Virus record (IMG/VR): IMGVR_UViG_3300013120_000738 | Location: 62,001 to 126,000 of that record | DNA: 64,000 bases | Reading direction: 5' to 3' (one strand) | In this document: one piece after another, positions 7,703 to 63,211 of the stretch | Position numbering within the stretch: position 1 is the stretch's first letter | How the letters are laid out: each line of letters opens with the position of its first letter | Notes under the pieces: model-generated | What the model was told of the DNA's origin: nothing | What the model saw: only the letters and a program-made list of their open reading frames with translations | Databases searched by the model: none | Made by a program: the position numbers and the translations under genes

Positions 7703-8279
7703 TTTTCATTCTCTTGCACGACGCACATTTACCACAACGTCGCCCATCTTTTCTAGGAAGTTCACAATACCAAACATGCTCAAATAAGCCTTCAAGCTTT
7801 AATTTAGTTACTATCTCTCCCTTATCCATCCATTCTAATGGGAAAACAAGATCACACGATTTCATATTAATAGCTAATAAATATGTAAACGCATATTTAT
7901 ACCATTCCATGTAGTGCCAAATATCATCGCCACGAATATATGCGACTGCTAACTCTTCACCATCATTTAGGTAACCAGTACCAGCAAATAACCAGATATT
8001 TGGCTGTGCGAGCCCATGCGCACCATCACCAAGCGTGATACCACGCTGTGCCGCCTTAATAGTCATCTCACAATGAGGAAATTTATACCCACGAGCACGA
8101 AACTCTTTAATCAACCGCCTCCTAGCACGTTTTTCATATGGACATGCTAGAACTTGATCATGATTGACAGCAATAGTTCTTACATCCTTGCCAGATACAA
8201 GACTGTCAAATAAAAGAAGAGTAGAGTCGCACCCACCGGACCATAAAATTAATCTAGGCTTCTCAGGAGTCCCATCCAC
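7689..8279 (-). CDS. queC: QueC-like (7-cyano-7-deazaguanine synthase family) PP-loop ATPase
   Basis: LWSGGCDST PP-loop; PL....K.EI; C-terminal WYC-x8-CGKCASC..R Zn site typical of QueC. Confidence 0.8.
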   Translation of the reverse strand: MDGTPEKPRLILWSGGCDSTLLLFDSLVSGKDVRTIAVNHDQVLACPYEKRARRRLIKEFRARGYKFPHCEMTIKAAQRGITLGDGAHGLAQPNIWLFAGTGYLNDGEELAVAYIRGDDIWHYMEWYKYAFTYLLAINMKSCDLVFPLEWMDKGEIVTKLKLEGLFEHVWYCELPRKDGRRCGKCASCKRMKNADK

Positions 8280-10968
8280 GCTGCAACAACCTTATAATTA
8301 TCTCGCCGCGAGCAAGGGTAAAAGTACCTCTCTTCTCATCGTATTCAACGATCATCTGAACGCCACTACCAGGTACCAGATTGTTCTCATCCTGAATCCC
8401 AAGCTCTCTGGAAAATATCAGAACCAAAGCATTTTGGATACCATCGCTCACGAAAACTCTCGCATATGGTTTCTTATTGCGAGAAATCGAGAATTCTAGA
8501 TCGGTGATCACAACCTCAAGCTTCGGCTCTCCACCATTCTTAGCTACCAACTTTGCATCTTCTATCGTACAATTACCTTCTATAGCATACAGGTCTAGCG
8601 GGGAATGTAAGTAATAGCCAAGATATTTCTTCTCAAATTCTAGCACTTCCTGTAGTGTAAAATCCTCTTCATATAATGCCATCACCTTTTCTGACGAATC
8701 ATCAGGTTTTGGATTCCATTTTTCTAGTTTAGGAGGAATTTTCCTACGTTTCGGGTAGAGTTTCTTATATTCATCAATCTGCCTCTGCCTCTCCTCTTGG
8801 ACAGCTTCTTCTGTCCATCCTTCTTTATTCAGCAGTTTCTGCTTTATCTCACGTTTCAATTGCGTGATATCCTTGCCCGTACAATACTTATACCTATAGT
8901 ATTCCCATGTAGCCCTAGCATTTCTATAGCCCTCGAACCGTCTGAACGCCCCAAGCTTTATAAAGGCTTCCATTACGGTCTTTTTCTTGCCCTTTTCTGC
9001 AATAAATTCATCCAGTGTTGTAAACGTACTACGACCTTCCCACAATGGTGCGGTAGTATCACCTATTCCCTTAATACCGATCAGTCCTTGATTCACCACA
9101 TCGCCGGTAACGGTAAAATCGGCCGTAAGATTTTCTACGTTAGTCGTCTCGAATTTTACACCCCTAACTTTCTTCTTGGGAGGCTGTGTACCAGCGTATG
9201 TGGTAGATGTAGGTTTCCACCCTTCTGAACGTGCTACCCCCATATACCGAACTAGTTTGTCAGGATGACATTCACTCATTACAGAAGCCCACCACTCGGG
9301 TGCGAAATGAGCCTTCAACCAAAGACAGCGATGGGCTACAAGACAATAACTAACAGCATGACTACGATTGAACGCATACCGCCCAAACGTCTTCATCTTC
9401 TCCCACCACTCCCTAGCTTCAGCTTCCCCAAGCACCTTCGAGGCACCAATCACCCATTTCTTCTCTACCGGCTTAAGCTTATCTGCCCATTTCTTAGCGA
9501 CTGCTTTTCGGGCATCTTGAGCTTCTGGTGCTGTAAAATATGCGATCTTCTGCCAAATAGCTTGTAATTGTTCCTGATAAACTATAACACCATGAGTATC
9601 ATTCAAAACCTCCAATATATCAGGATGCAATTTCTTCCGCCATCTACCCCTAGAATCATCACGATTTGCTACTGCCTCTGGGATAGAAGCCATAGGACCA
9701 GGGTGACCCATAGCATTAAACAACATCAAATCCTCGAAATTCCGCACACCATTAGCTAATATACTCTTAGCAAGATCTGTGTCGAATTGAAAAACTCCAT
9801 CTGTCTTCATCTCATTTGCAAGGCGAAGCACATGTTTATCATTGAGGTCGATATAAACCTTTTTACCTTTCCTATCAAAGAAATATCCCGCCCTGTTCTT
9901 AGTTGGGTCTATATCATCCCAACCGTCCATACTCTTACCAAATGATATCCCTCTATTCTGCTCAATAAGCTGACAACAAGTATAAATATACTTGAGTGTC
10001 TTCAGTCCTAGCAAATCCCACTTCTGATATCCGAATTTAGATAACTGAGTATTGCGACCTTCCGTCCACATACTGATCCAATATCCCTTGTTGCTACTCT
10101 TAGCCATAGGGATATTGCCATATAATGGTCTATCAGTAATAATGAGTGCACCAGCATGCATGCCCATATTTCTGATTCGACCAACCAATCTCGTAGCAAG
10201 ACTAATAACCTTCGGATAACTCCTAGCAAATTCTCGTAACTTCTCATGCTCTTTCAGCAATTGACCAATGGTTGGATTTTCTGTATCGGTAGATCCACAA
10301 TTAGGACATTTTGTACCATCATGGGATGTTCTACATTCAACCTTCTCACCAGTCTTCTCATCTATAGTATGCCCTTTACAGACTGACTTGCCGCCGTCTT
10401 TTACATCATCGACATCTTCAGGCAAATTAGTTGTTAATTCATACGCTTCTGTCTTGTCGACAAGTCCTGTCGCATCACAGACATCGATTATAGCTGATTT
10501 GAATTTGTATGTTGTCCAGGTACCAACACTGCAGACAGAACCATAACCATCACTTACATCAGTACCATATTGTGATATAGCATATTCCTTAATAGGATCA
10601 CGTGCCTCAGGAAGACAATCCACATCTACATCAGGCATGTCTGGGTCTTTGCGAAGATCTGACGGAACAAAGCCATGTTCAGTCTTAAACTTCGCTACCT
10701 CAGCGGCCTTTACTGTATTAAGTATAGGCTCTTTTCGGCCTGCTAGAGGATCGTCAGAAACAAGACCTAACAACCAAAGGAAAAGTAGATTATTTCCATC
10801 CGATTGAAATCTCTTACCTTCATTATAATATTGGTTGAATTTAGCTATAGCACCTTGCTTCTCAACCTCAGTCAATTCAAATTTCAATCGTCGGCTATAT
10901 TCCTCTGGCAAGCCTACAACTTTCGAGGTAGCCAACTCCTTCATTTCTTCCCAAGTGATATCAGCCAT
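8263..10968 (-). CDS. dnaE: DNA polymerase III alpha (DnaE), C-terminal/catalytic half
   Basis: MPDVDVD, GMHAGA, KWDLLGLKTL, GVFQF, IVYQEQ, YAFNRSHAVSY, IKGIG (HhH), EKKYLGYY.HSPLD, C-terminal OB fold; no PHP domain. Confidence 0.95.
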   Translation of the reverse strand: MADITWEEMKELATSKVVGLPEEYSRRLKFELTEVEKQGAIAKFNQYYNEGKRFQSDGNNLLFLWLLGLVSDDPLAGRKEPILNTVKAAEVAKFKTEHGFVPSDLRKDPDMPDVDVDCLPEARDPIKEYAISQYGTDVSDGYGSVCSVGTWTTYKFKSAIIDVCDATGLVDKTEAYELTTNLPEDVDDVKDGGKSVCKGHTIDEKTGEKVECRTSHDGTKCPNCGSTDTENPTIGQLLKEHEKLREFARSYPKVISLATRLVGRIRNMGMHAGALIITDRPLYGNIPMAKSSNKGYWISMWTEGRNTQLSKFGYQKWDLLGLKTLKYIYTCCQLIEQNRGISFGKSMDGWDDIDPTKNRAGYFFDRKGKKVYIDLNDKHVLRLANEMKTDGVFQFDTDLAKSILANGVRNFEDLMLFNAMGHPGPMASIPEAVANRDDSRGRWRKKLHPDILEVLNDTHGVIVYQEQLQAIWQKIAYFTAPEAQDARKAVAKKWADKLKPVEKKWVIGASKVLGEAEAREWWEKMKTFGRYAFNRSHAVSYCLVAHRCLWLKAHFAPEWWASVMSECHPDKLVRYMGVARSEGWKPTSTTYAGTQPPKKKVRGVKFETTNVENLTADFTVTGDVVNQGLIGIKGIGDTTAPLWEGRSTFTTLDEFIAEKGKKKTVMEAFIKLGAFRRFEGYRNARATWEYYRYKYCTGKDITQLKREIKQKLLNKEGWTEEAVQEERQRQIDEYKKLYPKRRKIPPKLEKWNPKPDDSSEKVMALYEEDFTLQEVLEFEKKYLGYYLHSPLDLYAIEGNCTIEDAKLVAKNGGEPKLEVVITDLEFSISRNKKPYARVFVSDGIQNALVLIFSRELGIQDENNLVPGSGVQMIVEYDEKRGTFTLARGEIIIRLLQRGWDS

Positions 10969-11324
10969 GCTTGATACTCTTCCAATCTATCCGGATGGTG
11001 ACCTTTCACATGCAAAGTCCTGCCGGGAGTACTACGTAATTCCTTACCACAGAATGGGCATTCTAATTCATTGATTGGTTCTAATTCTGGCTCTTTTTCC
11101 ACTATCTCTGGCACTGAATCCCAATCCAAGACCCACGGCTCCTTGATAAGGTATTTGCCGTCTCTGGCTTCGGCGGGCGCATAATACAAATAATAACCAT
11201 TTTCTTTGGCTTTTCGAAGCAAGCTCTGATGTTCTTTTTTACTTTTTGGTAGATGAGATGATATTATTTTGCTTGGCGCTTTCACAAGCACAAATGCAGT
11301 TCTTTTATATGTGATATCTGACAT
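10941..11324 (-). CDS. C2H2 zinc-finger protein
   Basis: CPFCGKELRSTPGRTLHVKGHH. Confidence 0.75.
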   Translation of the reverse strand: MSDITYKRTAFVLVKAPSKIISSHLPKSKKEHQSLLRKAKENGYYLYYAPAEARDGKYLIKEPWVLDWDSVPEIVEKEPELEPINELECPFCGKELRSTPGRTLHVKGHHPDRLEEYQAWLISLGKK

Positions 11325-11330
11325 ACATTC

Positions 11331-11750
11331 TTAACACGGCAGATCATCAATAGTGCCACTATCATAGTTTTCTTGATCTTTCAACGCACGTTCTGCGGCT
11401 GACTTAGCAACTAACATATAATTATTTAATTCATCTATAATTTCAATAGATATATCCTTATAATAAGTATACCACCTTAAAGCTTTAGGACGAGAACTTA
11501 TCATAGCCTCTATCTCGGGATGGCATATATAAAGACATGCCGGAAGCCCTCTAAAACCTGGCAGAACTGCCGATAAACCCAATACCACACTACGAAACAT
11601 AGCTTCTTCTTCAGATGAACTACCAAGAGTATATCCATATATTCTATGGCGGTATCTTCCATCTCCAACGACCAACAAAACACCACAACTAGATGACCGT
11701 AGAGCATCAGAATCTTCTGTTATACTATAACAATATATATCAATTTTCAT
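11331..11750 (-). CDS. Degenerate RNase H-fold protein
   Basis: IDIY...GVLL...TLG.SS.EEA...V.LGL resembles the RNase HI N-terminus, but the catalytic acidic residues are not conserved. Confidence 0.5.
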   Translation of the reverse strand: MKIDIYCYSITEDSDALRSSSCGVLLVVGDGRYRHRIYGYTLGSSSEEEAMFRSVVLGLSAVLPGFRGLPACLYICHPEIEAMISSRPKALRWYTYYKDISIEIIDELNNYMLVAKSAAERALKDQENYDSGTIDDLPC

Positions 11751-12265
11751 AGAACATTACCAGCAGAATCTCGCAAATCAGGATACGTTGCCTTAGTAAA
11801 AGTACTAAGAGCTCTCAATGTATCTGCCATCCCTTTAAGAACAGCATTTTTGGCAGCTATTTTATCTGGTAATCCCCTACTCTTTCCCAGCATTACTAAT
11901 ATCTCGTCACCTTTTTGCCGGATATTCTCCGGAAATTCCAATCCCTGATTATTAGCTTTGGCTTTTCTCTCATCAACAGATCGCTGGATGAATAAGGCCA
12001 ATGCTTCTACAATGCTGAAAGCTAAACTACTTATCTCCGTTTCCAACTTTTCCAGTTCTTCCTTGGCCTTATCGGGCGTCATCGCCAATATTAAATATAA
12101 TTTATCTATAAAATCTATCGACTTCAATCCGTATATGCATAATTGATTGTTAGGGCCTTGATACATCATCAAGTGCAATTGCATTGAATGCTTCAATTCC
12201 TTCAATGCCTGGCTATTAGAATTTATATTAATTGTAAGTTCAGGAGTATCTCTTTTCTTGGCCAT
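11747..12265 (-). CDS. Hypothetical protein
   Basis: 172-aa ORF with ATGA coupling to the downstream gene. Confidence 0.7.
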   Translation of the reverse strand: MAKKRDTPELTININSNSQALKELKHSMQLHLMMYQGPNNQLCIYGLKSIDFIDKLYLILAMTPDKAKEELEKLETEISSLAFSIVEALALFIQRSVDERKAKANNQGLEFPENIRQKGDEILVMLGKSRGLPDKIAAKNAVLKGMADTLRALSTFTKATYPDLRDSAGNVL

Positions 12266-12313
12266 AGTTGAACTCTCTTACTGGTAGTTATTGACAAGAC
12301 TTATTATAAATAC

Positions 12314-13747
12314 TCATTCAACTATCTCTTTCGGTACTGATAAATCCAGCATATATCCACCACGACTAGAAGCTAAGAATCTATCGAACGATAATCCCCA
12401 TAGCATAGGATCAAGGACATGAATACCGATCAGGAAGCACACTAACGACCCACCAGCACTTCCTCTAGGACTAAATGGCCAGCCGTGTTGTTTCCCAAAT
12501 CTTATCAAATCGCGTGTAATTAAAAAGTAACTAGCAAAACCCTTATCGATAAATCTCTTTAGTTCTATACGAGCTTGATCTATATATGTCACTTCATTAC
12601 CATCAATGAAAAACTTCCGCTTATCCTTATCAAGTCCTCGTTTCTTCAACTCTATTGCTACAATTTCTTTTAGTTTTTTATTAGCATCAGGAATTTCTGG
12701 GATTTTCGGTGCTGTATCAACGGTAAATGGTTCGCATTTATCTGCTATTTGAAGCGTGTTATCACACATCGCCTCGAATATTCTATCATCTACCCCATCA
12801 CTGTACTTGCCATTTTTAAATGTAGCCCATAGCTCTGCTCTAGACTTCATAAATTGTTCATCACTATTCACATGGAATAGATCTGGAGAATCTATAGTTG
12901 TTCCCTGTTCGACAGCCATCATTACTTTCTGTAATATAAAATCTTCTCGACGAAGATAATGGCAATCGTTGGTCAAAGTAAGTGGCAGTCCGAGATGATC
13001 TGCGACAGCAACTAACGTTCTAAACGTCTTATAATCATCCGGAATCCCAGGCATTTGTGTTTCTATATAAAAATCCTCTCCAAAAACTTTACGGAACTTT
13101 CTTACCCAAGCTAATGCAGCGTCTGTACGTTGTTTCCCAGTCCTCTCGAATACAACCTCGTCTTCTTTATTCTTCAATTCTCTATATCGCAATTCATGAC
13201 ACACTGGACCATTAAGGCACCCAGACAGAACTATGAGTCCTTCCTTGAATTCACACAATTTATCAAACCATATACGATTATATTGGGTTTTGCCCATCCC
13301 GAACAAACCCGTATCGTAGGCTTGTGTCGTTAATTTTATTAGATTATCGAATCCTGTTTGGTTCTTACATAGGACTGTCAGGTGTCTGTTTCGGCCGATA
13401 CGATATGATAAATCAGGGTTGGCGTCTCGCCATTCTTTGGATCGTATCTTAAAGCCTCTAGCTACTAAGTCCTGTCGTTGTGGTTCAAAATCATTGAAGT
13501 ATATCTCACAACCTGGAATATACTTCAACCCGTGCTTTTTGAATGCGAGATACATGTCTGGCACTGAAGCCATATGACCATGCTCTGTAGCACTCATTGC
13601 GGGATAACCACGCTTTGCACATTGCTCAGCATATTGCTCTGGCGTGGCTACACCATCTAGCGCAGAAAAGACTGTATGATTATGAAGGTATACAAATTCA
13701 CTTGGGCCTTGATAATCTTTTGGATCGTATTCGTTCGACATTTTCAA
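12314..13747 (-). CDS. dnaE: DNA polymerase III alpha (DnaE), N-terminal half: PHP domain plus start of palm
   Basis: FVYLHNHT.FS.LDG, TEHG, GCEIY, HLTVL.KN..G..NL, LSGCL.G, TNDCHY, GFASYFL, RGSAGGSLV.FLIGI...DP, FDRFL; stops just before the PDID motif. Confidence 0.95.
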   Translation of the reverse strand: MKMSNEYDPKDYQGPSEFVYLHNHTVFSALDGVATPEQYAEQCAKRGYPAMSATEHGHMASVPDMYLAFKKHGLKYIPGCEIYFNDFEPQRQDLVARGFKIRSKEWRDANPDLSYRIGRNRHLTVLCKNQTGFDNLIKLTTQAYDTGLFGMGKTQYNRIWFDKLCEFKEGLIVLSGCLNGPVCHELRYRELKNKEDEVVFERTGKQRTDAALAWVRKFRKVFGEDFYIETQMPGIPDDYKTFRTLVAVADHLGLPLTLTNDCHYLRREDFILQKVMMAVEQGTTIDSPDLFHVNSDEQFMKSRAELWATFKNGKYSDGVDDRIFEAMCDNTLQIADKCEPFTVDTAPKIPEIPDANKKLKEIVAIELKKRGLDKDKRKFFIDGNEVTYIDQARIELKRFIDKGFASYFLITRDLIRFGKQHGWPFSPRGSAGGSLVCFLIGIHVLDPMLWGLSFDRFLASSRGGYMLDLSVPKEIVE

Positions 13748-19949: not shown

Positions 19950-21047
19950 TCAATCTGCGATTCCCTTTTCGGCGGCCTCTAAACATCCTGTAGCAACACA
20001 GAATAAAGGCCTATCCGACTTGGTCACAGTTCCAATATCAAATGGTGGGCCTATCTCGTCAAACTTCTTGGCGACACGCTTAGTAAAGCCCTCAGGGGAA
20101 CTACTGCCGCCAGCCATATAAACATTTATAGCACCCTCTAGTCGTGCTTCCGACTCGTGCTCCTCAAAGCCCTTGATAATACCGTCAATCACGGTGCTGA
20201 TAAGGACATCATAGTGTAGTACGACATCCATACCTACACGATCATCTGGTTCACTACCAGGTGTGAGATTTACATCCTGTTTTCTCTTTGATACTGTGGT
20301 AGGTGTCTCTTTTGCTACTTTCCTACGGGTCTTCAAGGCTTGGGGGTTATAACCATGACGCATTGCTACTTGTTCATCTATCCAGTCGCCTGCGCCTACC
20401 CAGCAGAAAGAATATATCTCAAGGCCATATTTCACGTAGCTGACAGTAACAGTACCAGCACCCCATGAGATCCCAATACCTGTACCATCTTCGCTCATAT
20501 CGATTACGATAGCATGGGATTCTTTTATCGCGTTATGTGTTATCTTAGCGTCGGTTTCATATCCTTCAATAATAATGTTGACTACACGTTCATGATAATC
20601 AACATTTAATTCCTTATTGAGTGATGGAGCGGTGGTGCAGTAACAAACCTGTACCTCGTCACCAAATTTTCCAATCTCCTTTTCAGCCATCTCCATTAGG
20701 CCTTGGACAATCGTTCCTAGGATTGTGATGGCTTCTTCGTCAGCAGATATTCCACCTTCTGCCATTGGTCTACGTAGTGTGTCGTTCTTGGCGTATGCAA
20801 ATTCTTCTGCATCTTCTCCAAGTACGATGGCTTCTCCTGTTTCGGGCATTTCTACCCATTTTGCAGGTCTTTTTGTACCGTCTGCCCTCATTTTGCTAGG
20901 ATCGTCTAGCATGTTCCGAATGAATGGCGTTGCTCTTTCAAATGGCCAATACCCATTGATTTCTGAGATGTAGTTGACCTTTTCATTATCCGTGCGGTAA
21001 GCAAGGACTACTGTTCTTGTGCCAACATCGATACCCAAGTGTCTCAT
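19950..21047 (-). CDS. Actin-fold ATPase (MamK/ParM/MreB superfamily)
   Basis: GIDVGT (phosphate 1), RRPM..G, GISWGAGT (phosphate 2), GAGDWID, MAGGSS (adenosine); GGAG SD before ATG 21047 (ORF track extends in frame to 21479). Confidence 0.85.
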   Translation of the reverse strand: MRHLGIDVGTRTVVLAYRTDNEKVNYISEINGYWPFERATPFIRNMLDDPSKMRADGTKRPAKWVEMPETGEAIVLGEDAEEFAYAKNDTLRRPMAEGGISADEEAITILGTIVQGLMEMAEKEIGKFGDEVQVCYCTTAPSLNKELNVDYHERVVNIIIEGYETDAKITHNAIKESHAIVIDMSEDGTGIGISWGAGTVTVSYVKYGLEIYSFCWVGAGDWIDEQVAMRHGYNPQALKTRRKVAKETPTTVSKRKQDVNLTPGSEPDDRVGMDVVLHYDVLISTVIDGIIKGFEEHESEARLEGAINVYMAGGSSSPEGFTKRVAKKFDEIGPPFDIGTVTKSDRPLFCVATGCLEAAEKGIAD

Positions 21048-21174
21048 GAGTACTCTCCTACCTTTATGGACGTCACCCAACTTATATACACTATAATCGG
21101 ATGAAGGTTTCGGTTCTAGAATTGAAATACGTTTGGTTTGCCCCTCAGACCGAGGGACGTCTTTTGCGCGGTGG

Positions 21175-21519
21175 TCACCCTTTTCGGAGTGAACAGGCTT
21201 TGATTTTGCGGGCGGTGGGATTACTTTGGGAACCGGAGTCGGTATCTTTTTGTTTGAGGTCTTTTCGTTTGATTTTGTAGTAGGTTTTTGGTCCGATTCG
21301 CGGGAAGGTGGCACGTTGATCGGTTTCGGTCGTTTCGGAAGTGACGTCACCCTTTGATCCACCACCCTCGGTTTCACTTCCATCTCTGCTAGAAATTGAT
21401 AAATCATCGATAGGGGAAGCCTCACTACCTCGCGAAGTCTTTTCAGCACTTCCGATCGTTGGGCTTTCTTCGGATCCACAGAACAGTTGCCTTAATAAAT
21501 TAATTACTTTCTTCATCAT
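21175..21519 (-). CDS. Low-complexity hypothetical protein (frame uncertain)
   Basis: 114-aa ORF overlapping in another frame the long open 5' extension of the actin-like ORF. Confidence 0.4.
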   Translation of the reverse strand: MMKKVINLLRQLFCGSEESPTIGSAEKTSRGSEASPIDDLSISSRDGSETEGGGSKGDVTSETTETDQRATFPRIGPKTYYKIKRKDLKQKDTDSGSQSNPTARKIKACSLRKG

Positions 21520-24950: not shown

Positions 24951-26561
24951 ATGTTCATGTTTGACGACATCCTAGATAGAATACTAAATCTCATGGAAGG
25001 GATAGAGGAGAAAGCTATTCCCCTAGCCCAACGTCTATTAAGTAAGAAATCAAAATGGACTGGTAAGAATAGATGGAGCGAAGAAGAAACCACAGAATTC
25101 GTCAAATCTCTCGGCCGCGAAGAAAGGCACCCAGGTTTCGCATTTCAATATTATTGTGATCCAACCGGAGAACGGGGAAAGTACACTCCGTATATCGTAA
25201 ATCAACTCGCAAAAGGCAATTTAATTATAGAACCCGATAGGGAAGAAGATGCCCCACGAATGTTGGCAGCCCTAAAATTTTTCCACGAAAATTCCAAAAA
25301 ACCAGGGTGGAATTATCCAAAAGATATAAATCAATTCAAGAACTGGCGGCAGTTGGAAGATATCGCCGAAAAAGAAAGTGATAAAATCTTCCAAAGCAAT
25401 AGACAACAAAGAAAAGAAATTTCTGCTGGTTCCAAGCTAGTATCAGAAATCACCGTGCCTAATAAAGAAAAAACTACATATCAATTATATATGATAACAG
25501 AACCAGAAACGCTGGTAATGATGGGAACAGGAACAAGATGGTGCACCACAGGATTATCAAAACAATCAGGTATTGGTGCTCATGGGCCTCATGGCGGACG
25601 GCAAACCAAAGACGACCAAAATGCCCCATACATGCATTATGGTAAAAATCATCCAAAAGAAGGAACCGGAAGACTCCTAAAATTCATGAAAGTGGGAGGA
25701 TATGAAGGATTTCCGCTCACAGCAGCCAGATATCTCGGAATGGGCTGGGGAAAACTTGACCCCGCTCGAACACAATCATATAGTGCTAGATTTACACCAA
25801 TTTATATAATATTTCAAAAAGACGGTAAGAACGAACACGAAGAAATAGAAGGAATACGTGTTGGACAAGTAGGTAGAAGTGGACAAATTGCACAACTATC
25901 TGAAGATGGACAAGAATGTAAAGACCCAACTGACAGAGAAATTACTATTGTCAGCCCTGCCTTAGCATATGCCGCTAAACAATGGCTTGATGAAAACAAT
26001 TTAGCAATTGGGCGTGTAATACTTAAAAGAGTAAGAAAAGAAAACATAGATGATATTGATAATGCGATAAATTTTGTAGGATTTCCAAATGCACCTGAAA
26101 TATCAAAAGGCGAAATATTATATCTAGATGATGGCGGAGATGACCCTTATTATCAATATCACGCCCGCCCACCTAGAGAAACTAAAGCCCGTGCAGAACT
26201 TACATTCGGTTGGGATAATTGGTCAGTTCACTATATAAAAGTACCAGCCAGAAATGAACATGATGAGGATTGGAGTGGCTGGATACTAGATGATGGGCAA
26301 TTGCTTGAAGACATTTACGTCGATGCCGCAATCGAAATCGCAAAATCTACAGGACTAATACTAGATGTTGATGACATTATAGAAGAACTGAAAGACAAAC
26401 AAGAAAAAAGGCGAATTTATCCATCTACACCACCTGATCCAATCACTCCTGATTCGTACGTGTTCCAAGACCTGATCCAACATACTAGAGCAACAGAGCT
26501 CAAGACAACAGATACTTTTCTAACTAATTTCATGAATATGTTAGAGGAGTTATATGAATGA
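24951..26561 (+). CDS. Large-phage hypothetical protein (GKY..Y, KDINQ, GTRWCT motifs)
   Basis: 536-aa ORF with motifs recurrent in large-phage proteins of unknown function. Confidence 0.75.
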   Translation: MFMFDDILDRILNLMEGIEEKAIPLAQRLLSKKSKWTGKNRWSEEETTEFVKSLGREERHPGFAFQYYCDPTGERGKYTPYIVNQLAKGNLIIEPDREEDAPRMLAALKFFHENSKKPGWNYPKDINQFKNWRQLEDIAEKESDKIFQSNRQQRKEISAGSKLVSEITVPNKEKTTYQLYMITEPETLVMMGTGTRWCTTGLSKQSGIGAHGPHGGRQTKDDQNAPYMHYGKNHPKEGTGRLLKFMKVGGYEGFPLTAARYLGMGWGKLDPARTQSYSARFTPIYIIFQKDGKNEHEEIEGIRVGQVGRSGQIAQLSEDGQECKDPTDREITIVSPALAYAAKQWLDENNLAIGRVILKRVRKENIDDIDNAINFVGFPNAPEISKGEILYLDDGGDDPYYQYHARPPRETKARAELTFGWDNWSVHYIKVPARNEHDEDWSGWILDDGQLLEDIYVDAAIEIAKSTGLILDVDDIIEELKDKQEKRRIYPSTPPDPITPDSYVFQDLIQHTRATELKTTDTFLTNFMNMLEELYE

Positions 26562-26761
26562 GATTTAAATATGACCCAAATGAACCACCAGCCCACGTAA
26601 AAGCTGCTATTCGAAAAAGACATCTGAGGGTTAAAGCACGCAAAGATATGGAGATGATAGAAGCTAATAATCGCCGTAAATTCAATATGGACCCTGTAGT
26701 AAAGCTTATGAAACCCGATGGTTGGGACTGGCGGCGAGATAAAGAACCAGGACTGATCTAG
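26558..26761 (+). CDS. Hypothetical protein
   Basis: ATGA coupling and upstream GAGGAG. Confidence 0.65.
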   Translation: MRFKYDPNEPPAHVKAAIRKRHLRVKARKDMEMIEANNRRKFNMDPVVKLMKPDGWDWRRDKEPGLI

Positions 26762-26796
26762 TAAATAAGATATCAACACCCCTTAGGAGTTATATC

Positions 26797-27075
26797 ATGG
26801 CCACAAAAAAGAAGGCCGCCAAGAAGAGAGTCGCTAAGAAATCAACCAAGAAAGCTTCGCGGAAGAAAAAGCGACAACAAAGGCGAGCAAACCGACGCGC
26901 CAAAATCCAACTAGTCACCAACTATGTCGAAGACTTCAGGGAAGCGAATCCCAACGGCACAAAAGAACAGTGCTTCTCGGCCGTTGGTGCACAGCTCCGA
27001 AAGGATTTCAAGGGCAATCCTTTCATAGACATCTTGATCACTATCTTGAAGATGCTGCTTGATATCTACTTCTAG
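26797..27075 (+). CDS. Small protein with histone-H1-like basic N-terminus
   Basis: MATKKKAAKKRVAKKSTKKASRKKKR; AGGAG SD; amphipathic C-terminal helix. Confidence 0.8.
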   Translation: MATKKKAAKKRVAKKSTKKASRKKKRQQRRANRRAKIQLVTNYVEDFREANPNGTKEQCFSAVGAQLRKDFKGNPFIDILITILKMLLDIYF

Positions 27076-27263
27076 AAATACCCCGGTATTTCATTAGCAG
27101 CTCTATCTCTACCTGACCAGCCTCTCTTTAGGCAATCCTTAACAGAAGGTACGAGCCATTCGTATAGTTCTGTAAAGGAATCAATATGTAAATCCATGTG
27201 AAATTCTTCAGTGGGAACATACCATTTAGCATATGTCATTATTTGGCATAAGTGTTGTGTCAT
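27072..27263 (-). CDS. Small hypothetical protein
   Basis: 63-aa ORF filling the gap. Confidence 0.4.
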   Translation of the reverse strand: MTQHLCQIMTYAKWYVPTEEFHMDLHIDSFTELYEWLVPSVKDCLKRGWSGRDRAANEIPGYF

Positions 27264-27411
27264 ATAACTCGAATAGTATTAGTACATATCTTCTATCATT
27301 TCTTTGGCTAACTGTTATATCTCCATCGCTGTATAATACCGCCTGGTTAGATTTAAACCTGTCTTTGACTTCTTCGTAAATTCCTTTAATTATTGCTTGA
27401 AGAATTTTCAT
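27226..27411 (-). CDS. Small hypothetical protein
   Basis: 61-aa ORF; N-terminus resembles that of 28974-29240. Confidence 0.45.
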   Translation of the reverse strand: MKILQAIIKGIYEEVKDRFKSNQAVLYSDGDITVSQRNDRRYVLILFELYDTTLMPNNDIC

Positions 27412-27459
27412 TCAAAATTAAGGTAGGTTATTTCTACCTTACCCCACCTTCAAGGTATT

Positions 27460-27915
27460 ATGACAACACAAACTAAATTCTGCCGCACATGTCAGACAGA
27501 AAAACCTATTGAAGAATTCGATAAACTCTACAACAAAAAATACCCTCATTATAGGAGAAGTAAATGTAAAAAATGCTACAGAGAAAAGCCAAGTTTCAAA
27601 AAATATGACCGTCGCAAACACAATAGGAGAAGAATTCGAAAGCAAGTCGCAATGAAAATACGAGCTATCGAATATTTAGGTGGTAAATGCCAAGGCGAAT
27701 CATGTCCATTACCACAAGGTTACAAAATTCCATATTGTGCATTTGATTTTCACCATCGAGATCCTAAAATGAAGTCGTTTTACATCAACAATTTTATTAG
27801 AAAAAAGAATGCTGCAGAATCTTGTTGGGAAGAATTACGAACTGAACTAGATAAATGTGATTTATTATGTTGTATATGTCATAGAATAGTACATCAAAAC
27901 AATGTTGATTTATAG
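27460..27915 (+). CDS. HNH endonuclease with N-terminal zinc finger
   Basis: CRTC..EKP..EF...CKKC; LGGKC; FDFHHRDP..K; ELDKCDLLCCICHR..H. Confidence 0.88.
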   Translation: MTTQTKFCRTCQTEKPIEEFDKLYNKKYPHYRRSKCKKCYREKPSFKKYDRRKHNRRRIRKQVAMKIRAIEYLGGKCQGESCPLPQGYKIPYCAFDFHHRDPKMKSFYINNFIRKKNAAESCWEELRTELDKCDLLCCICHRIVHQNNVDL

Positions 27916-28683
27916 TTAGGCTCCCCCCTACCTTTATATCTTTAAAGAATTTTTAAAGTTTAAGTAGGATTTAGCGATCTTGTCACTAAAGAATCACAGA
28001 TAAGCACCATCATCTAATGCCAAGGGGAAGCCATGCGATGGTCGAAATCTGTGTCCACTCTCCCGCCACCGTCATCTCCCTCCCAGGAGACCGGCCGCTC
28101 TATCAGTCTTTGGTGCCTCGGGAGCTTCGAGTTACTTTATTCTCTCATTAAATAGGAAGTCTTGATTAGGCAGATGGGTAGCAACGGGTTCTCCATCTTG
28201 GCTATAGCCTTCACCCTGATTGTTCGTGGCGCATACACGTGGTCGCCGTGCCAAAGCCCGTTGGTCCGGCCCCCGTCAATCATTTATCAAGACCTCCAAG
28301 ACTGCCAGTGTTTCCAAGTCATGCTCTGTCAACATTTCATTTTCAGCGATTCAATAATTCATTTTCAGCGATTTCAACTACCTCGTGAGCACTTTCTTGT
28401 CGGTACACTGGTTAACGTTGGTAAAGAGATTAAAGCCTACGGTCACTCGATCGGTGGCTGAGAGGTTCCACCCCTCATAAACCAGGTGTTCCTTTTAGAT
28501 CGTACATCATGTACTACGGCTAGGGCAGGGGACGCACCTTCGGTGACACCCAGACACAAGGTCATAAAAACACCCTCAAAGAACCTAAATGCTCTAGCCA
28601 ATCGAGCTTAATAGAATACGAACTGTGGCAAATAGGGCCACTATGTTTGGCAAATGCCAAAGCAGTACCAACACTGCCGAGAA
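27916..28683. ncRNA. Candidate large structured non-coding RNA or structured DNA element (unclassified)
   Basis: Longest intergenic gap in the window, visibly GC-richer than the flanks, with many nested complementary pairs (28155-28166/28286-28297, 27995-28001/28047-28053, 28417-28423/28666-28672, 28446-28464/28592-28606). Confidence 0.55.
28336..28373 (+). repeat. Tandem 16-bp direct repeat TTCATTTTCAGCGATT x2
   Basis: Copies at 28336-28351 and 28358-28373 (22-bp period). Confidence 0.9.
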
Positions 28684-28902
28684 CTAAATACGAAGGGCCG
28701 AATCCGACTCAAAAGTGCTATTATCACAGATAGCACAATCACCATTCGGATAACGTGCACAATCAGGGTGAAAAATAACCCTTGGTGTGTTAGTCTTCTG
28801 TAGTTCTACTTCGATCTTTTCCCACATCTCATCGATCGAGATATGGCAGCGGATGAACTCACTTACAAGATAATCAACGAATGTCATTTCTGGATCTTTC
28901 AA
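28684..28902 (-). CDS. Small hypothetical protein
   Basis: 72-aa ORF with HPDC...CAIC. Confidence 0.45.
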   Translation of the reverse strand: MKDPEMTFVDYLVSEFIRCHISIDEMWEKIEVELQKTNTPRVIFHPDCARYPNGDCAICDNSTFESDSALRI

Positions 28903-28973
28903 ATAGCTTCTCTACATGTATTTTCTTATGCTAGCACAATGTACGAAAATAGCATATGTAAAGCACAACAACG

Positions 28974-29240
28974 CTATGGAACGATACACCCATCACATAT
29001 ATGAAGAATCCTGTCCATAAAATCCTCGTCATGTATCGAAATATTATAATGCATTACTCTTTTAGCAGTATCTAGACGGATAATATCTGAATCATCTCGT
29101 ATAGTAATACCAAACATTTCATGGTCCTCATCAATGCCAAATCTAATTATTCGACCATCTACACATTTTATAGCCTTAACAGCAAATATCCAAGGCGTAT
29201 CATAAAGTGCTGCAAAGATAGCTTTAATTATATCATCCAT
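28974..29240 (-). CDS. Hypothetical protein
   Basis: Starts immediately after the sbcD-like stop. Confidence 0.65.
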   Translation of the reverse strand: MDDIIKAIFAALYDTPWIFAVKAIKCVDGRIIRFGIDEDHEMFGITIRDDSDIIRLDTAKRVMHYNISIHDEDFMDRILHICDGCIVP

Positions 29241-30341
29241 TTATACTTCTGCCTCTTCCAAGGCATATATTTCATCAGCTTCTTGAATAACATCTGTATG
29301 TGCAGTAACCAAGACCTTCTCATCTAAATCCTTGGCACCCTTCTCCTTATCCTTCTCATACCAAGACCTGAATATATCCTTTGACGTATCCTGTTGTTCT
29401 TTCTGTACTACCTCCTGGTCTCTCTTCTGGAAAAGACTCATCCAACGAACACCAACAGCTCCCATTCCGGTTAATTGCTGATGGATACTCCGTTTTTCAT
29501 CCGTTGTATAATCACGTTGAATAGCAACCCTGACAACATTTCCACTTATATCTTCTTGTGCCTTTTCCGGCAACAAATCATCAAGTAATGTACAGAATTG
29601 TGGGGCTGGGGCCTCATCCGGCAATAACTTAGCTCCGGCTTTCCATATGTTGATAAATTTGTGATCCCCAGATTCCAAATCAAGACAATAAAAACCATGA
29701 GCTATATCACCCTCATCGAATTTGAAGGGGATTAGTGAACCCGGATAGAAAGTATTATCCCCAATCTGCTGCCTGTTATGGAAATGCCCTGTATAAATCC
29801 TCCTAAAAGGTGAATCATCAAAATTGATTATTGACCAATTCTGAAGGAGAAAGCAAGTATTCATTTTAGCATTACAAACACCCACATGGGTAAAGAGATA
29901 ATCACCATCCTCAGCCCGTTTATTCATCCTTGATAGGACTTTCCTGTAGGATTTCTCGAAGCTGATAAATGGTAATACCCAAAAACGGGTATCATCTAGT
30001 TGAAGTATTTTCAAGTCCTCTATTACTGTAAGGTGCTTTCTAAGTATTTGTAAACTATTGATTTTCCATGAGTACCTGAGGAACATGTCGTGGTTGCCGG
30101 GGAAGACTATCCATTGTTGATTGTATGGATCTTCTGAGACCTCTTCAAAGAACCTTGCAATATGCGAAAGTGTCTCTATATCTAGGGCCTTACGATCATG
30201 AAACAAATCACCAAGGACCACAACAGTGTCAATAGAAGCTACTTTACAGTATTCTCGCAGTACTTTGCAGGCCCATAGAATGTCTCGCAACCTTCCAGGT
30301 ACACCAAAATGAATATCAGCCGTAATAGCGATTTTTGACAT
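29241..30341 (-). CDS. sbcD: Mre11/SbcD-like nuclease (gp47-like)
   Basis: ADIH, LGDLFH, GNHD, FTH, GHFH, YPGS metallophosphoesterase motifs. Confidence 0.92.
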   Translation of the reverse strand: MSKIAITADIHFGVPGRLRDILWACKVLREYCKVASIDTVVVLGDLFHDRKALDIETLSHIARFFEEVSEDPYNQQWIVFPGNHDMFLRYSWKINSLQILRKHLTVIEDLKILQLDDTRFWVLPFISFEKSYRKVLSRMNKRAEDGDYLFTHVGVCNAKMNTCFLLQNWSIINFDDSPFRRIYTGHFHNRQQIGDNTFYPGSLIPFKFDEGDIAHGFYCLDLESGDHKFINIWKAGAKLLPDEAPAPQFCTLLDDLLPEKAQEDISGNVVRVAIQRDYTTDEKRSIHQQLTGMGAVGVRWMSLFQKRDQEVVQKEQQDTSKDIFRSWYEKDKEKGAKDLDEKVLVTAHTDVIQEADEIYALEEAEV

Positions 30342-30388
30342 ATTTCACATCCTAAATAGGGTTCGTAACATATCTACTGGGTTAATAC

Positions 30389-31363
30389 ATGATGAGAGCG
30401 AGAGAAAGAATATCACCGAAAGAAAAGAAAAAGCCTCGGACAAGGTACGTCGAGGACCGTAGGCCCTATATATCTTATTTGAAACCTGGATGGAAAACTG
30501 GTAGAGGTGCTTGTCGTAGATGGGCTGTGGAACCACGATGGATTAGACATGATGAAAAAGACGCAGAATCTGGGCCAGTACCAATATTCCTCGAATACCC
30601 AAATGGCAAACCAAAAAGAGATCCACCAAAGTGGAGTCATCAGGATATATTAATCCTTATTGATTTCTATGCCAGCATAAGCTGGGGTATAGGTAGTAAC
30701 CGCCACCAGGATATGTTAGGACACTGGAGGGAATTCAAAAGGGCTTATATTAGACAAGAGGGTAAATGTGCTATCACCCAATTACCAATATTTGGTGGTC
30801 CTAGTTTAGGTCCTAATGGAATAGGTATAGATTTTATAAGTTATAAAAGAGGGGCTAAAAAGAATGTTAGGTTGACAACCCCTACGATAGCACTAACACG
30901 GTATCGTCGCCCAGTCGTACGAGAACCTAATTATGGTTTCCCGTTTGAAGAAAGAGATTTTGAAGGACAACCAATAACTTATATAATATTCAAGACTTTT
31001 CAACGAGAGATTATAAAGCAAAATCCACTATGTCATTTACCAATAGTAGCATTCATCAGCACATTTGATGAGAAGTATAATGAATTAAATTTCGAATATG
31101 TTCTACTAGAAACTAAGACAAGGGATAAACCATCAATAGATGATTTCAAAAGCCTAAAAACCGAGCACAATACTTTTTGTAGATTTCGTATTCAAGATGA
31201 TAAATTATATCTCACTAAGTGGAAAGTACCATTTCATCGCCCAACGTTCTATCCAAATGATAAGGAAGAAACTAGAATTATTAGATTGGCTGACCCGATT
31301 GATATTATTGCCGAGATGTATAAATGGCTTGTAGAAGCAGCATCTTCAGCAATTGTGGCATAA
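30389..31363 (+). CDS. Hypothetical protein with degenerate HNH-like segment
   Basis: QEGKCAIT.LP...GID...NVRL resembles 2474-3025 but lacks several motif residues. Confidence 0.6.
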   Translation: MMRARERISPKEKKKPRTRYVEDRRPYISYLKPGWKTGRGACRRWAVEPRWIRHDEKDAESGPVPIFLEYPNGKPKRDPPKWSHQDILILIDFYASISWGIGSNRHQDMLGHWREFKRAYIRQEGKCAITQLPIFGGPSLGPNGIGIDFISYKRGAKKNVRLTTPTIALTRYRRPVVREPNYGFPFEERDFEGQPITYIIFKTFQREIIKQNPLCHLPIVAFISTFDEKYNELNFEYVLLETKTRDKPSIDDFKSLKTEHNTFCRFRIQDDKLYLTKWKVPFHRPTFYPNDKEETRIIRLADPIDIIAEMYKWLVEAASSAIVA

Positions 31364-31922
31364 TCGCTCCAAAAATATATTGGAGGATACCATGTTCCAA
31401 GTAGAATTATTATCAATGGGCGATGGACAATCATACGAACATGCTACCGTCTGCGAAGAAGAGGACTTAGATAGGCTTAATATACCAAAACCATTTGAAA
31501 AATGGACAGCATGTTTCTTCGCTAATGGTAAATGTATTGTTTGTCATCACTATAAAATAGCAGTGCTCCACCTCGACAGGCATCAGAGATCTGGCCCAGG
31601 ATGTGTCCATGTCGAGAGGGTATTATTTGCTGGCGATATTAGTTATGCACCAGCACTAATCTTACCAGTAGAGGTCTGGCGATCACATGGCGTACCAGAA
31701 TATTTTGTGAAGGAATATGGATTTGAGGGGCAATTTGTTATCAGTTGTCAACAAGGGACTATAATTACTGCCGACCAGAATGTAGCTAGTATAATCGTAC
31801 AATACCCTAAACACCAAGGTATAACCAGAAGTAAGCACGTTCAAGAATCAGTCGGGAAGACAGTTAAACAAACTGCTGTACCAAACACAGTTCACAGCAA
31901 GATAGAACGGCGTAAGAGATAA
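31353..31922 (+). CDS. Hypothetical protein
   Basis: Likely start ATG 31392 after GGAGG. Confidence 0.7.
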   Translation: MWHNRSKNILEDTMFQVELLSMGDGQSYEHATVCEEEDLDRLNIPKPFEKWTACFFANGKCIVCHHYKIAVLHLDRHQRSGPGCVHVERVLFAGDISYAPALILPVEVWRSHGVPEYFVKEYGFEGQFVISCQQGTIITADQNVASIIVQYPKHQGITRSKHVQESVGKTVKQTAVPNTVHSKIERRKR

Positions 31923-47412: not shown

Positions 47413-48579
47413 ATGCAATCTGGAACGTTCAATGTAGTTACCGATGGACAATGGGGCTCCTGTGGAAAAGGTTTGATATCAACAGCAATCGCCGACAGAT
47501 ATCGACCAAGCGTCATATCAACGACCAATATGGCAAATGCGGGGCATACCGCAGTCGATAGTGATGGAGCCACATTCATAGCTAAGGCCCTACCAGCCCC
47601 AGCAATTCTTGGAAAATGGCGAACTGATTATCTTCCATATATCGTAATAGGACCAACAGCCGCATTTCATGCCAAGCAAATGGCAAAGGAAGTCGCCGAA
47701 ACCGAATGTGCTCCAAGGCTCGTGATACATCCAAGAGCGGGCATAATCACAGAGCAACACCAAGAAATCGAGAATCAACTCAAAGGTGGGACAAAACACG
47801 TCGCTAGTACCATGCAAGGTTGTGGGGCATTCCTTGCCGACAAGATTATGAGGCGGCCAGATTTGAAGCTTGCAGGCGATACAGAATTCACCCAATACTC
47901 AGGGTATACTCTCGAAAAAGCACTCGCGGCATGTTTACGTGGTACAAAATGGCAAAGCCTCTGCGTAGACTTATCGATACCACGCATATTACAAATGTTC
48001 ATGGAGGTGGGCAATACTATCCTACATGAAGGATCTCAAGGATTCAGCCTGGATATTAACCACGGCTCACATTATCCTCAGTGCACCAGCAGAAGCACGA
48101 CGGCTATGCAAAACATGGCCGACATGGGTATTACTCATCATCACATGGGTAGAGTAATATTGGTCATCAGGCCAGCGCCTATTCGCGTCGGTAATGTAGT
48201 TGAAGGTGGTAAAACTGTAGGATATTCTGGCGATTGTTATCCTGACCATACAGAAACAACTTGGGAAGCTATTGGTGAGGCTTGTGGAGCACCACAAGAA
48301 ACGTTTAAAGGTGAATTAACTACAGTCACAAAAAGATTACGACGGGTTTTCACGTTCTCCGATATCCAATTTAAGGAAGCTGTTGCGATTAATGGAGCGA
48401 CCGAGATTGCTCTTAATTTCGCAAACTATATTGATTGGAAGTGTTATGGAACTAATAACCCAAACAATCTTCCTCCCAAAGTCACCGATTTCATAAAGAA
48501 ATTAGAAGATCTAGGTGGCGTCAAAGTCACTATAGTTGGCACTGGTCCAAGAAACGACCATGTTTGTTTCTTAGACTAA
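47413..48579 (+). CDS. purZ: PurZ, N6-succinyl-2-amino-dAMP synthetase (adenylosuccinate synthetase-like, 2-aminoadenine pathway)
   Basis: DGQWGSCGKGL (Ser at the PurA Asp13 position), NMANAGHT, EGSQGFSL, YPQCTSR, R..PIRVG, SGDCYPD, ELTTVTKR.RRVFTFS..Q, LNFANY (replaces PurA TKLD). Confidence 0.9.
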   Translation: MQSGTFNVVTDGQWGSCGKGLISTAIADRYRPSVISTTNMANAGHTAVDSDGATFIAKALPAPAILGKWRTDYLPYIVIGPTAAFHAKQMAKEVAETECAPRLVIHPRAGIITEQHQEIENQLKGGTKHVASTMQGCGAFLADKIMRRPDLKLAGDTEFTQYSGYTLEKALAACLRGTKWQSLCVDLSIPRILQMFMEVGNTILHEGSQGFSLDINHGSHYPQCTSRSTTAMQNMADMGITHHHMGRVILVIRPAPIRVGNVVEGGKTVGYSGDCYPDHTETTWEAIGEACGAPQETFKGELTTVTKRLRRVFTFSDIQFKEAVAINGATEIALNFANYIDWKCYGTNNPNNLPPKVTDFIKKLEDLGGVKVTIVGTGPRNDHVCFLD

Positions 48580-61788: not shown

Positions 61789-63211
61789 AGCGTGACGGCC
61801 GAGGTCTAACTGTACCACGTGTTCCAGGCCTTGGAGGTAGGATAGGAGGTCTCCCTCCTAGTCTTCTTTTATCTTCACCAGGATCTGGTTGATCCACCTT
61901 CTTATGTTGAAGTACTTCTTCTTCGGGAGTTTTAGGTTCTGTTGGTTCTTCTTGTTCTAGGTCTACATCAAATGGTGTGCCTTCTACAGCTCCTTGCATT
62001 AATTTATATGCGGTTTGTAGTCTTTTAGCTAGTTCGTTGAATGGTCCTATTTCATGCTTTCGTAGAACTTCTGATGGTTTTACATCTCCAAATCTCTTTT
62101 GGGCTGCTTGCCATGCTTTAACATCTCTAGCTATACTCTCTGGTGTCATACCAGCTTCTTTGAGCTTTTGACCGAATTGTTCACGGACCCTATCTGAGAG
62201 CACAGTAATTGCTAATTTAGCTATTCTTTCATTCTTAGCTGATTCAGTGTATTTTCCAAGTTTTTGTGCAGCGTATTTTGGATTGCTGACAAGTGTTCTA
62301 AGATTTCTACCAAGTCCTTTTAGGCGATCTCCTGCACCAGATAAACGACTTCTCGCACCACCCCACAAATTCCTAAGTTTATCTCTCAATCCTGCTTCGT
62401 TGATTATGATAGGTGTTCCTACCCTAGTAAACATAGATTCAACTATCAGTGGCAACTTTGTCTGAATAGTTGGATGGTCTAATAATATATCAGCTATAAA
62501 TGCTGCAGCCTCTTCTGCGTATTCCGGATCACCTGTTGATCGCTTGCGTGGTGTTGGAGGATTTCTTAATCTATCTAAGACATCCCCAAGATCTGTTTCA
62601 CCACGGACTCGGTCTCTTACATCTCTAGCTCTGCCACTCTCGCGACCTTCACGACCTCTTTCCAGTTCTCCTCTCAGTTCTCCGGTGAGGTTATCAAGAA
62701 AGCTACTTACTAAGCCAGGTTTCTTTTCTTGTTGTTCGCCCTCGTCACCTAGATCTCCACTTACAGCATCTGGTTTTGTTACTTGCCCTCTAATATTATC
62801 GAGCAATTCTTGCCGCTGTTCTGCGCCTATCGCAAATGTGTCGAATAATTCGTTCCACCATTTGGTATTATCAAATAGATTTACATCACTACTCTTTGCA
62901 GCATCAAGTAGTTGTTCTACCTTCTCTGTCCCACCTCGTCCAGGAGCTACGAATTGCAATAATGAATCAAGATTACTACTCATCCCTGGTGTGAGCGATG
63001 CATTCAGTCTAGCAAGACCAGCTTTGAATAAGGAAAGGATAGCACTTTTATCGGCTTCGGATAGAACATGATCTACTGATTCGATAAATAAATTAGGAAG
63101 CGAATGCTGTACACCAGCAGATTCATTAATAGTTATATCGCGTCCAGCTAAGTAACGTAGTTGATTACTTAGAAGACAACAATTGGTATCGGTTATCGTA
63201 GATAATCTCAT
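61781..63211 (-). CDS. Hypothetical protein (helical, possible internal virion protein)
   Basis: 476-aa ORF; MRLSTI start, INEAG motifs, Pro-rich tail. Confidence 0.75.
   Translation of the reverse strand: MRLSTITDTNCCLLSNQLRYLAGRDITINESAGVQHSLPNLFIESVDHVLSEADKSAILSLFKAGLARLNASLTPGMSSNLDSLLQFVAPGRGGTEKVEQLLDAAKSSDVNLFDNTKWWNELFDTFAIGAEQRQELLDNIRGQVTKPDAVSGDLGDEGEQQEKKPGLVSSFLDNLTGELRGELERGREGRESGRARDVRDRVRGETDLGDVLDRLRNPPTPRKRSTGDPEYAEEAAAFIADILLDHPTIQTKLPLIVESMFTRVGTPIIINEAGLRDKLRNLWGGARSRLSGAGDRLKGLGRNLRTLVSNPKYAAQKLGKYTESAKNERIAKLAITVLSDRVREQFGQKLKEAGMTPESIARDVKAWQAAQKRFGDVKPSEVLRKHEIGPFNELAKRLQTAYKLMQGAVEGTPFDVDLEQEEPTEPKTPEEEVLQHKKVDQPDPGEDKRRLGGRPPILPPRPGTRGTVRPRPSRFK

Follow-up and report, generated by a model that had tools for sequence, protein, structure and literature searches.

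A large non-coding RNA with a conserved predicted fold, shared by uncultivated marine jumbo phages and matching no known RNA family

Very few classes of bacterial or phage RNAs above 500 nt with complex conserved folds are known, and each one found so far has turned out to be a ribozyme, a ribonucleoprotein core or, recently, an RNA-only nanocage. The ROOL and GOLLD RNAs are large ornate RNAs of phages and prophages, 570-800 nt long, with many helices and several pseudoknots, conserved domains separated by a variable or disordered segment, no obligatory adjacent protein gene and no known function. They are often encoded next to tRNA islands, GOLLD also occurs in marine metagenomes, and they were recently shown to form RNA-only nanocages (PMC12286853). 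Other structured RNAs of relevance are the HEARO/IscB omega-RNAs, found beside an IscB-type ORF (RuvC plus HNH, about 400-500 aa) that is conserved alongside the RNA, the group I and group II introns, which interrupt host genes, and RNase P RNA and tmRNA. Here we describe a conserved element of about 570-770 nt that is comparable in size and complexity to ROOL and GOLLD and to the introns, RNase P RNA and tmRNA, but matches none of the models of these families or of HEARO.

The element is found in a 64,000-nt stretch of DNA (the window; positions 62,001 to 126,000 of the IMG/VR virus record IMGVR_UViG_3300013120_000738). The record is 227.7 kb long, is estimated to be 63% complete, originates from marine samples and has no close cultured relative. 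It encodes a DnaE-type polymerase, a helicase, SbcC- and SbcD-like nucleases and a PurZ-like enzyme, and the element lies in this replication and recombination module, between an HNH endonuclease gene on the plus strand and a minus-strand operon with the SbcD-like gene, an 88-aa ORF and a 67-aa ORF (Table 1). A first-pass annotation, made from the sequence alone, had pointed to the gap at 27916-28683 as a GC-rich, densely base-paired non-coding island, and this observation is confirmed. The longest stop-free stretch is 101 aa (antisense), and no frame is conserved across 15 homologues. GC content is 45-51% in the gap, versus 30-38% in the immediate flanks and 43% genome-wide. However, the folding of the single sequence, whose comparison with shuffled sequences had been set as a test beforehand, is only modestly better than that of shuffles (z = -1.54 on the plus and -2.60 on the minus strand, 20 shuffles each), and the sequence alone would not have settled the matter; the proof is therefore comparative.

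As to the distribution of the element, a blastn search of the region against 50,697 phage records returned no match, and a search for related loci in IMG/VR with the SbcD-like protein alone also returned nothing. However, the SbcD-like protein has hundreds of homologues on metagenomic contigs of 60-440 kb, and loci retrieved through these, together with loci retrieved through DNA patterns taken from the first alignment, gave a total of 16 loci (designated by numbers such as L002) with a homologous element, all from related uncultivated marine jumbo phages. The neighboring SbcD-like proteins, where present, are 53-68% identical to that of the window (54-68% among those sampled). As to the patterns, the first, strict version gave no hits in IMG/VR, a relaxed version gave one viral hit, four metagenome hits and none in cellular genomes, and a second pattern gave seven viral hits, of which four are true and three of these new. 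The element was not found in 185,579 species-representative cellular genomes, in which the second pattern also gave 17 hits, about the number expected by chance, none of which matches the covariance model described below. The element aligns over its whole length (nhmmer and MAFFT), always in the orientation that corresponds to the minus strand of the window, and it is present in a single copy in its own genome.

The alignment of 13 full-length sequences provides the main evidence for the fold. RNAalifold predicts 76 base pairs, of which 58 show compensatory double changes. Of all cells in these pairs 96% are standard pairs, versus 36-43% when the 3′ partner is slid by one to three columns and 77% when partner letters are shuffled within columns, while the number of pairs with compensatory changes is 19-24 in the slid controls and 34.5 +/- 3.1 in the shuffles, with a maximum of 44. 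The pairs hold 117 G-U cells against 10 A-C cells, and the alignment folds at -89.5 kcal/mol, against -60.4 for the opposite strand, so that the functional strand is the minus strand of the window, the same direction as the upstream SbcD-like gene. A covariance model of the 3′ domain (R1; 164 positions, 34 pairs), built from 13 members, gives 96.5% paired cells, versus 35-45% when slid, with 24 of 34 pairs compensatory and a covariation score of 0.68, versus 0.26 for shuffles (0 of 500 shuffles as high). The window scores 142 bits (E=1e-34) against R1, and 16 other loci score 103-166 bits. It must be noted that the alignment has only about 15 sequences, some of them closely related, and thus the shuffle statistics overstate independence. 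Three further long-range pairings (H4, PK1 and PK2), first seen by eye, were tested by comparing the duplex energy of each sequence with that of partners permuted among sequences, and passed (Table 1). The middle piece, when submitted to RNAalifold on its own, gave no structure, as it was misaligned by MAFFT, and its hairpins were read by eye only.

Overall, there are about 19 helices in two conserved multi-helix domains that are tied together by a 12-bp long-range helix, with two covarying pseudoknots and with conserved internal loops, including a T-loop-like UUCGA motif. An optional helix, H2, lies between H1 and H3, and a variable hairpin follows the 3′ domain, ahead of the A/U-rich linker. 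The features shared by the family, and present in the window, are the GTATTTAA boundary motif, the 5′ domain, the 12-bp joining helix, the 3′ domain with AACUCGAA...CUGAUAGAG...UYGACCA...UGGWGCUU, and the G-rich tail of PK2. The latter motif is not repeated in the window, arguing against a general promoter element, and its pairing shows that the RNA runs on to about 27919, right up to the HNH stop codon. The window has the longest element, due to the tandem repeat in its variable tip and to an insertion of roughly 150 nt; the shortest is that of L044 (567 nt), and other compact homologues are those of L014 (about 576 nt) and L018 (about 613 nt).

Table 1. Coordinates of the conserved RNA element and of neighboring features (positions in the window; RNA helices are predicted from the alignment).
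Position	Strand	Feature	Basis
30341-29241	-	SbcD-like gene, followed by an 88-aa ORF
28887-28684	-	67-aa ORF
27916..28691	-	Whole conserved RNA element, about 775 nt here and 567-771 nt in relatives; ends approximate	nhmmer and MAFFT alignments to 15 homologues; RNAalifold
28684..28691	-	5′ boundary motif GTATTTAG; may be a -10-like promoter box or a processing site; here also holds the stop codon of the 67-aa ORF	GTATTTAA/G in the 13 aligned full-length homologues and in L043; GTATTTAT in L044; GTTTTTAA in the truncated L021
28662..28677	-	H1 hairpin (GCAGU/ACUGC); its loop GUUGGU(A), 28666-28672, is the 5′ strand of PK1	Alignment; PK1 permutation test
28417..28423	-	PK1 3′ strand (UACCAAC), just 3′ of the 5′ arm of the 12-bp helix	Variants include GUUGAC/GUCAAC, UCCAGA/UCUGGA, CCUAAC/GUUAGG, CCCAAC/GUUGGG; -11.0 against -8.9 kcal/mol for permuted partners, 3/5000 as low
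28625..28641	-	H3 hairpin, GUGGC-7 nt-GCCAC	5 pairs, 4 with compensatory changes
28446..28606	-	5′ domain, closed by H4 (CUCGAU 28601-28606 with AUCGAG 28446-28451); contains H5 (28591-28599 with 28518-28526), the hairpin CACC-GAAG-GGUG (28535-28545), a hairpin at 28500-28516 and a bipartite hairpin around 28455-28490	H5: 9 pairs, 8 compensatory; H4: -10.6 against -6.5 kcal/mol for permuted partners, 0/5000; alignment by eye
28134..28436	-	12-bp long-range helix H10 (28425-28436 with 28134-28145), joining the two domains and enclosing H11, H12, the variable tip and the insertion	12 pairs, 11 with compensatory changes, up to 6-7 pair types per position
28305..28411	-	H11 (28405-28411 with 28305-28311) and H12 (28396-28399 with 28315-28318), separated by a conserved internal loop; variable tip at 28319-28395	RNAalifold
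28329-28378	-	Tandem repeat, 22 nt x 2.2, with a 16-nt exact core, in the variable tip
28154..28301	-	Insertion specific to this window, not part of the conserved core	Gap in 12 of 13 aligned sequences; L002 has a shorter insert; not repeated elsewhere in the genome
27986..28148	-	Conserved 3′ domain: H13 encloses H14 (conserved loop contains CUGAUAGA) and H15 (loop GNRA-type in many homologues); H16-H17-H18 follow, with a conserved internal loop UUCGA / GCUU	Covariance model R1
27919..28032	-	PK2: C-rich loop of H18 (28021-28032, GGCUUCCCCUUG) with the G-rich 3′ motif (27919-27930, UAGGGGGGAGCC) across an A/U-rich linker	CCCACC/GGUGGG, CCCUCC/GGAGGG, CCCGAC/GUCGGG, CCUCUACCC/GGGUAGAGG and others; mean -17.4 against -12.3 kcal/mol for permuted partners, 0/5000, n=15
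27908..27915	-	3′ boundary motif CTATAAAT (consensus (C/G)TATAYT in relatives); overlaps the last codons and the stop codon of the HNH gene on the other strand	Alignment
27460..27915	+	HNH endonuclease gene, 151 aa; not part of the element	phrog_2255, E=3e-22

Of the stems listed in the first-pass annotation, CACAGAT/ATCTGTG, GTTGGTA/TACCAAC (the loop-to-distant-strand pairing PK1), the outer CTCGAT/ATCGAG and the hairpins GTGGC/GCCAC and CACC-TTC-GGTG are conserved and covary. The 12-nt stem 28155/28297 and the AGATGG/CCATCT hairpin with its proposed CAACGGG/CCCGTTG pseudoknot are real in the sequence, but all lie in the insertion that relatives lack, and are thus outside the reach of covariation. 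The pairing CACTAAAGA/TCTTTGGTG is not supported, and neither is the inner TGGCT.AGAG/CTCT-AGCCA pairing, where conserved helices use those bases differently, GGCTAGAGC pairing with GCCCTAGCC. The tandem repeat, which had been read as separating two structured halves, sits in the variable tip of a helix. The interpretation offered with these stems is partly supported: a novel large ncRNA is supported, while a partnership with the HNH protein, two divergent RNAs (proposed because G-U wobbles were thought not to settle the strand) and a structured replication origin are not, the strand being settled by the G-U pairs in favor of one RNA on one strand.

As to known families, a search of Rfam 15, in which GOLLD, ROOL and OLE are represented (PMC12286853), gave no hit at gathering thresholds in the window or in eight relatives, and no relevant hit at E<=10 on the element in the window, L018 or L003, including the models for HEARO, group I and group II introns, RNase P and tmRNA. 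ARAGORN found no tRNA or tmRNA genes in the window or in 13 related loci, and the nearest tRNA in the genome is about 66 kb away. The element is phage-encoded, as are ROOL and GOLLD, but has no tRNA genes nearby, and it also differs from these in sequence and fold, in host clade and in gene neighborhood. In the case of HEARO/IscB, the HNH protein here matches HNH-only PHROGs and has no RuvC domain, and the RNA is two to three times larger. As to introns, RNase P RNA and tmRNA, while long-range helices, pseudoknots, GNRA-type loops and the T-loop-like motif are shared, no host gene is interrupted, the SbcD-like protein being full length (360-370 aa) in all loci, and no 34-nt domain-V-like hairpin or P4-type conserved sequences were recognized by eye, an informal impression only. 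Our literature searches returned no description of such an RNA.

The gene context suggests that the element is autonomous. In most loci it follows the SbcD-like gene on the same strand, at a distance of 44-616 nt, sometimes with a weakly conserved small ORF in between, which stays with the SbcD-like gene when the RNA moves and is therefore not a fixed partner. However, in L002 and L044 the element lies 3.5-4 kb from the SbcD-like gene, between genes of the opposite strand, and still carries both boundary motifs, while in L008 it starts about 6 kb downstream, and it must therefore carry its own expression signals. The conservation of the 5′ motif holds even where no ORF ends there. In the window the motif is preceded by TTGAGT (TTGAGT-16 nt-TATTTA), and the same layout stands before the PurZ-like gene, but a -35 box is not general, and GTATTTAR is not enriched in the window, so that both a promoter and a processing site remain possible.

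As to expression, a 37-Mb seawater metatranscriptome (run X3) holds a single contig, 187 nt at depth 9.3, at 28519-28704, and nothing else across 25600-31400, while two DNA runs cover the whole stretch patchily at depth 2-5; a second search for sequencing runs found no further RNA libraries. The inner end of the contig abuts two strain-variable positions, 28518 and 28520, and is thus an assembly break and not an RNA end, while its outer end lies 13 nt upstream of the 5′ motif, so that read-through from the SbcD-like operon, or processing, is possible. As these are unstranded Logan contigs from one small library, in which DNA carry-over cannot be formally excluded, they suggest a stable, abundant RNA but do not prove it.

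Taken together, our analysis shows a gene for a large, ornate non-coding RNA, read on the minus strand and conserved as a single-copy element in a clade of uncultivated marine jumbo phages, while we only infer that it is an autonomous transcription unit making a stable, abundant, trans-acting RNA, and its mode of action, including any oligomerization, is inferred by analogy alone. We have good confidence that this is a genuine, previously undescribed structured RNA gene, and we rate it as a new class among the large ornate phage RNAs. As to the mode of action, a self-contained tertiary scaffold, working as an RNA-only or RNA-protein assembly during infection, as the ROOL and GOLLD RNAs are now understood, appears about as likely as not; in this view the conserved domains would form the body, and the variable segment would be a disordered linker. 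This idea rests on analogy in size, phage origin, pseudoknots and a variable linker. It seems somewhat more likely than not that this is an undescribed class, specific to a widespread clade of marine jumbo phages, with a function of its own, either as a new ribozyme or as a new RNA-only or RNA-protein assembly, and unrelated by descent to ROOL, GOLLD, OLE, introns, RNase P or tmRNA. Such a class would add a well-defined target for RNA structural biology, restricted to abundant but uncultivated phages, with compact homologues of 567-576 nt ready for transcription and cryo-EM, and a new player in jumbo-phage infection biology.

Of the alternatives, a large ribozyme, either self-processing or acting on another RNA, is possible but unlikely. 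The size, the pseudoknots and the many invariant unpaired nucleotides (AACUCGAA, CUGAUAGAG, UGAYGA, UUCGACCA, GGAGCUU) resemble catalytic RNAs, and the invariant GUAUUUAA at the 5′ edge would be a cleavage or processing site releasing the RNA from the SbcD-like operon transcript, with the X3 contig, which crosses this motif, fitting a longer precursor. However, no ribozyme model in Rfam 15 is matched even at E<=10, no evidence for a cleavage site exists, and in L002 and L044 there is no upstream same-strand gene to be released from. More doubtful still is a cis-acting untranslated region, either a 3′ UTR that stabilizes or regulates the SbcD-like operon mRNA or a leader for the downstream genes. 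While the element lies directly downstream of the SbcD-like gene in most loci, as close as 44-63 nt, and the X3 contig overlaps the end of the upstream ORF, the relocated elements of L002, L044 and L008 speak against it, downstream genes differ between loci, and a fold of this complexity is far more than known UTR stabilizers need. A DNA-level element, such as a replication origin or a packaging site with hairpins forming in single-stranded DNA, is very unlikely: the element does lie in the replication module, and the cumulative GC skew flattens near it, but the skew turn coincides with the divergent gene boundary near 30.35 kb and follows gene orientation (in a record that is incomplete), a double-stranded or cruciform DNA element would not show the strand-specific G-U pairing, and a fragment of the element is present in an RNA library while its flanks are absent. 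Finally, an RNA partner of the adjacent HNH protein in the manner of HEARO/IscB, or a degenerate mobile intron carrying the HNH gene, is supported by adjacency only and is already largely refuted, as the HNH gene lies on the opposite strand and is polymorphic within the sampled population, and tblastn finds no homologue of it in 17 related loci, whereas the RNA is present in 16.

As to the HNH gene itself, the simplest reading is that of a free-standing endonuclease gene of the homing type, inferred from sequence and context alone, that landed at the 3′ edge of this highly conserved gene and would be a selfish parasite of the locus and not a partner of the RNA, its placement being indirect testimony to the conservation of the RNA gene. 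Free-standing HNH homing endonucleases of T4-like phages are similar in being small ORFs inserted in an intergenic spot next to a highly conserved sequence, with presence or absence polymorphic among co-occurring strains and the flanking sequence diverging with it, though here the conserved neighbor encodes an RNA. In DNA run X1, a co-occurring strain diverges from the window exactly at 27412 and at 27972, which brackets the HNH gene and the 3′ tail of the RNA.

In DNA sequencing run X1, a co-occurring strain diverges from the window exactly at positions 27412 and 27972, which bracket the HNH gene and the 3' tail of the RNA, and this looks like an HNH-less allele with a different flank, as after homing with co-conversion. 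The related phage loci L004, L010, and L043 carry inteins or LAGLIDADG/Hint domains in the helicase and in other large genes near the RNA, and this phage clade is rich in selfish endonuclease elements. The DnaE-type DNA polymerase III alpha is split into two ORFs, one holding the PHP domain and the start of the NTPase domain, and the other holding the rest, with three small ORFs lying between them, and this could be either a split gene or a mobile insertion.

Further observations concern the immediate surroundings of the RNA. A 14-nt perfect inverted repeat links the window-only insertion of the RNA with the coding sequence of the upstream 67-aa ORF, which, as judged from the sequence alone and without recourse to covariation, is unlikely by chance at this distance. 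A small protein of about 64-76 aa, with a shared motif (..G.ISYDELW..), follows the SbcD-like gene in several phages, represented by the window and by the related loci L003, L010, L011, and L007, and it stays with that gene when the RNA is elsewhere. In another relative, L002, two extra GTATTTG copies lie 24-28 nt apart, just upstream of the GTATTTAG motif of the RNA.

Coordinates of additional features in the window, in the remainder of the virus record, and in related phage loci
Sequence	Position	Strand	Feature
Window	8263-13747	minus	DnaE-type DNA polymerase III alpha, whole split region
Window	12314-13747	minus	ORF with the PHP domain and the start of the NTPase domain
Window	10941-12265		Three small ORFs between the two polymerase ORFs
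Window	8263-10968	minus	ORF with the rest of the polymerase
Window	19950-21479	minus	Volactin-family (actin-like) protein
Window	27412 and 27972		Points of divergence of the co-occurring strain in run X1
Window	28210-28223 and 28759-28772		14-nt perfect inverted repeat
Window	28684-28887	minus	Small protein following the SbcD-like gene
L003	6142-6336		Small protein following the SbcD-like gene
L010	7098-7307		Small protein following the SbcD-like gene
L011	7120-7332		Small protein following the SbcD-like gene
L007	7181-7411		Small protein following the SbcD-like gene
Window	47413-48579	plus	PurZ-like adenylosuccinate synthetase
Window	51062-60448	plus	Single 3128-aa ORF
Whole record, outside the window	about 172-192 kb		Block of elevated GC
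L004	1-426		Intein or LAGLIDADG/Hint domain
L010	8100-11387		Intein or LAGLIDADG/Hint domain
L043	10382-12475		Intein or LAGLIDADG/Hint domain
L002	9600-9657		Two extra GTATTTG copies

Elsewhere in the window, a PurZ-like adenylosuccinate synthetase (phrog_1211, E=4e-59) hints at a 2-aminoadenine (Z-base) genome, and the relative L043 also carries an Adenylsucc_synt gene. The sequence GTATTTAA, with TTGACT 16 nt upstream, lies 36 nt before the ATG of the PurZ-like gene. The window also encodes a Volactin-family (actin-like) protein (PF25216, E=2e-39), along with a single 3128-aa ORF. Outside the window, the genome, which averages 43% GC, contains a block with 54-57% GC, and the record has only three predicted tRNAs (Met, Pro, and one called SeC), all far from the RNA.
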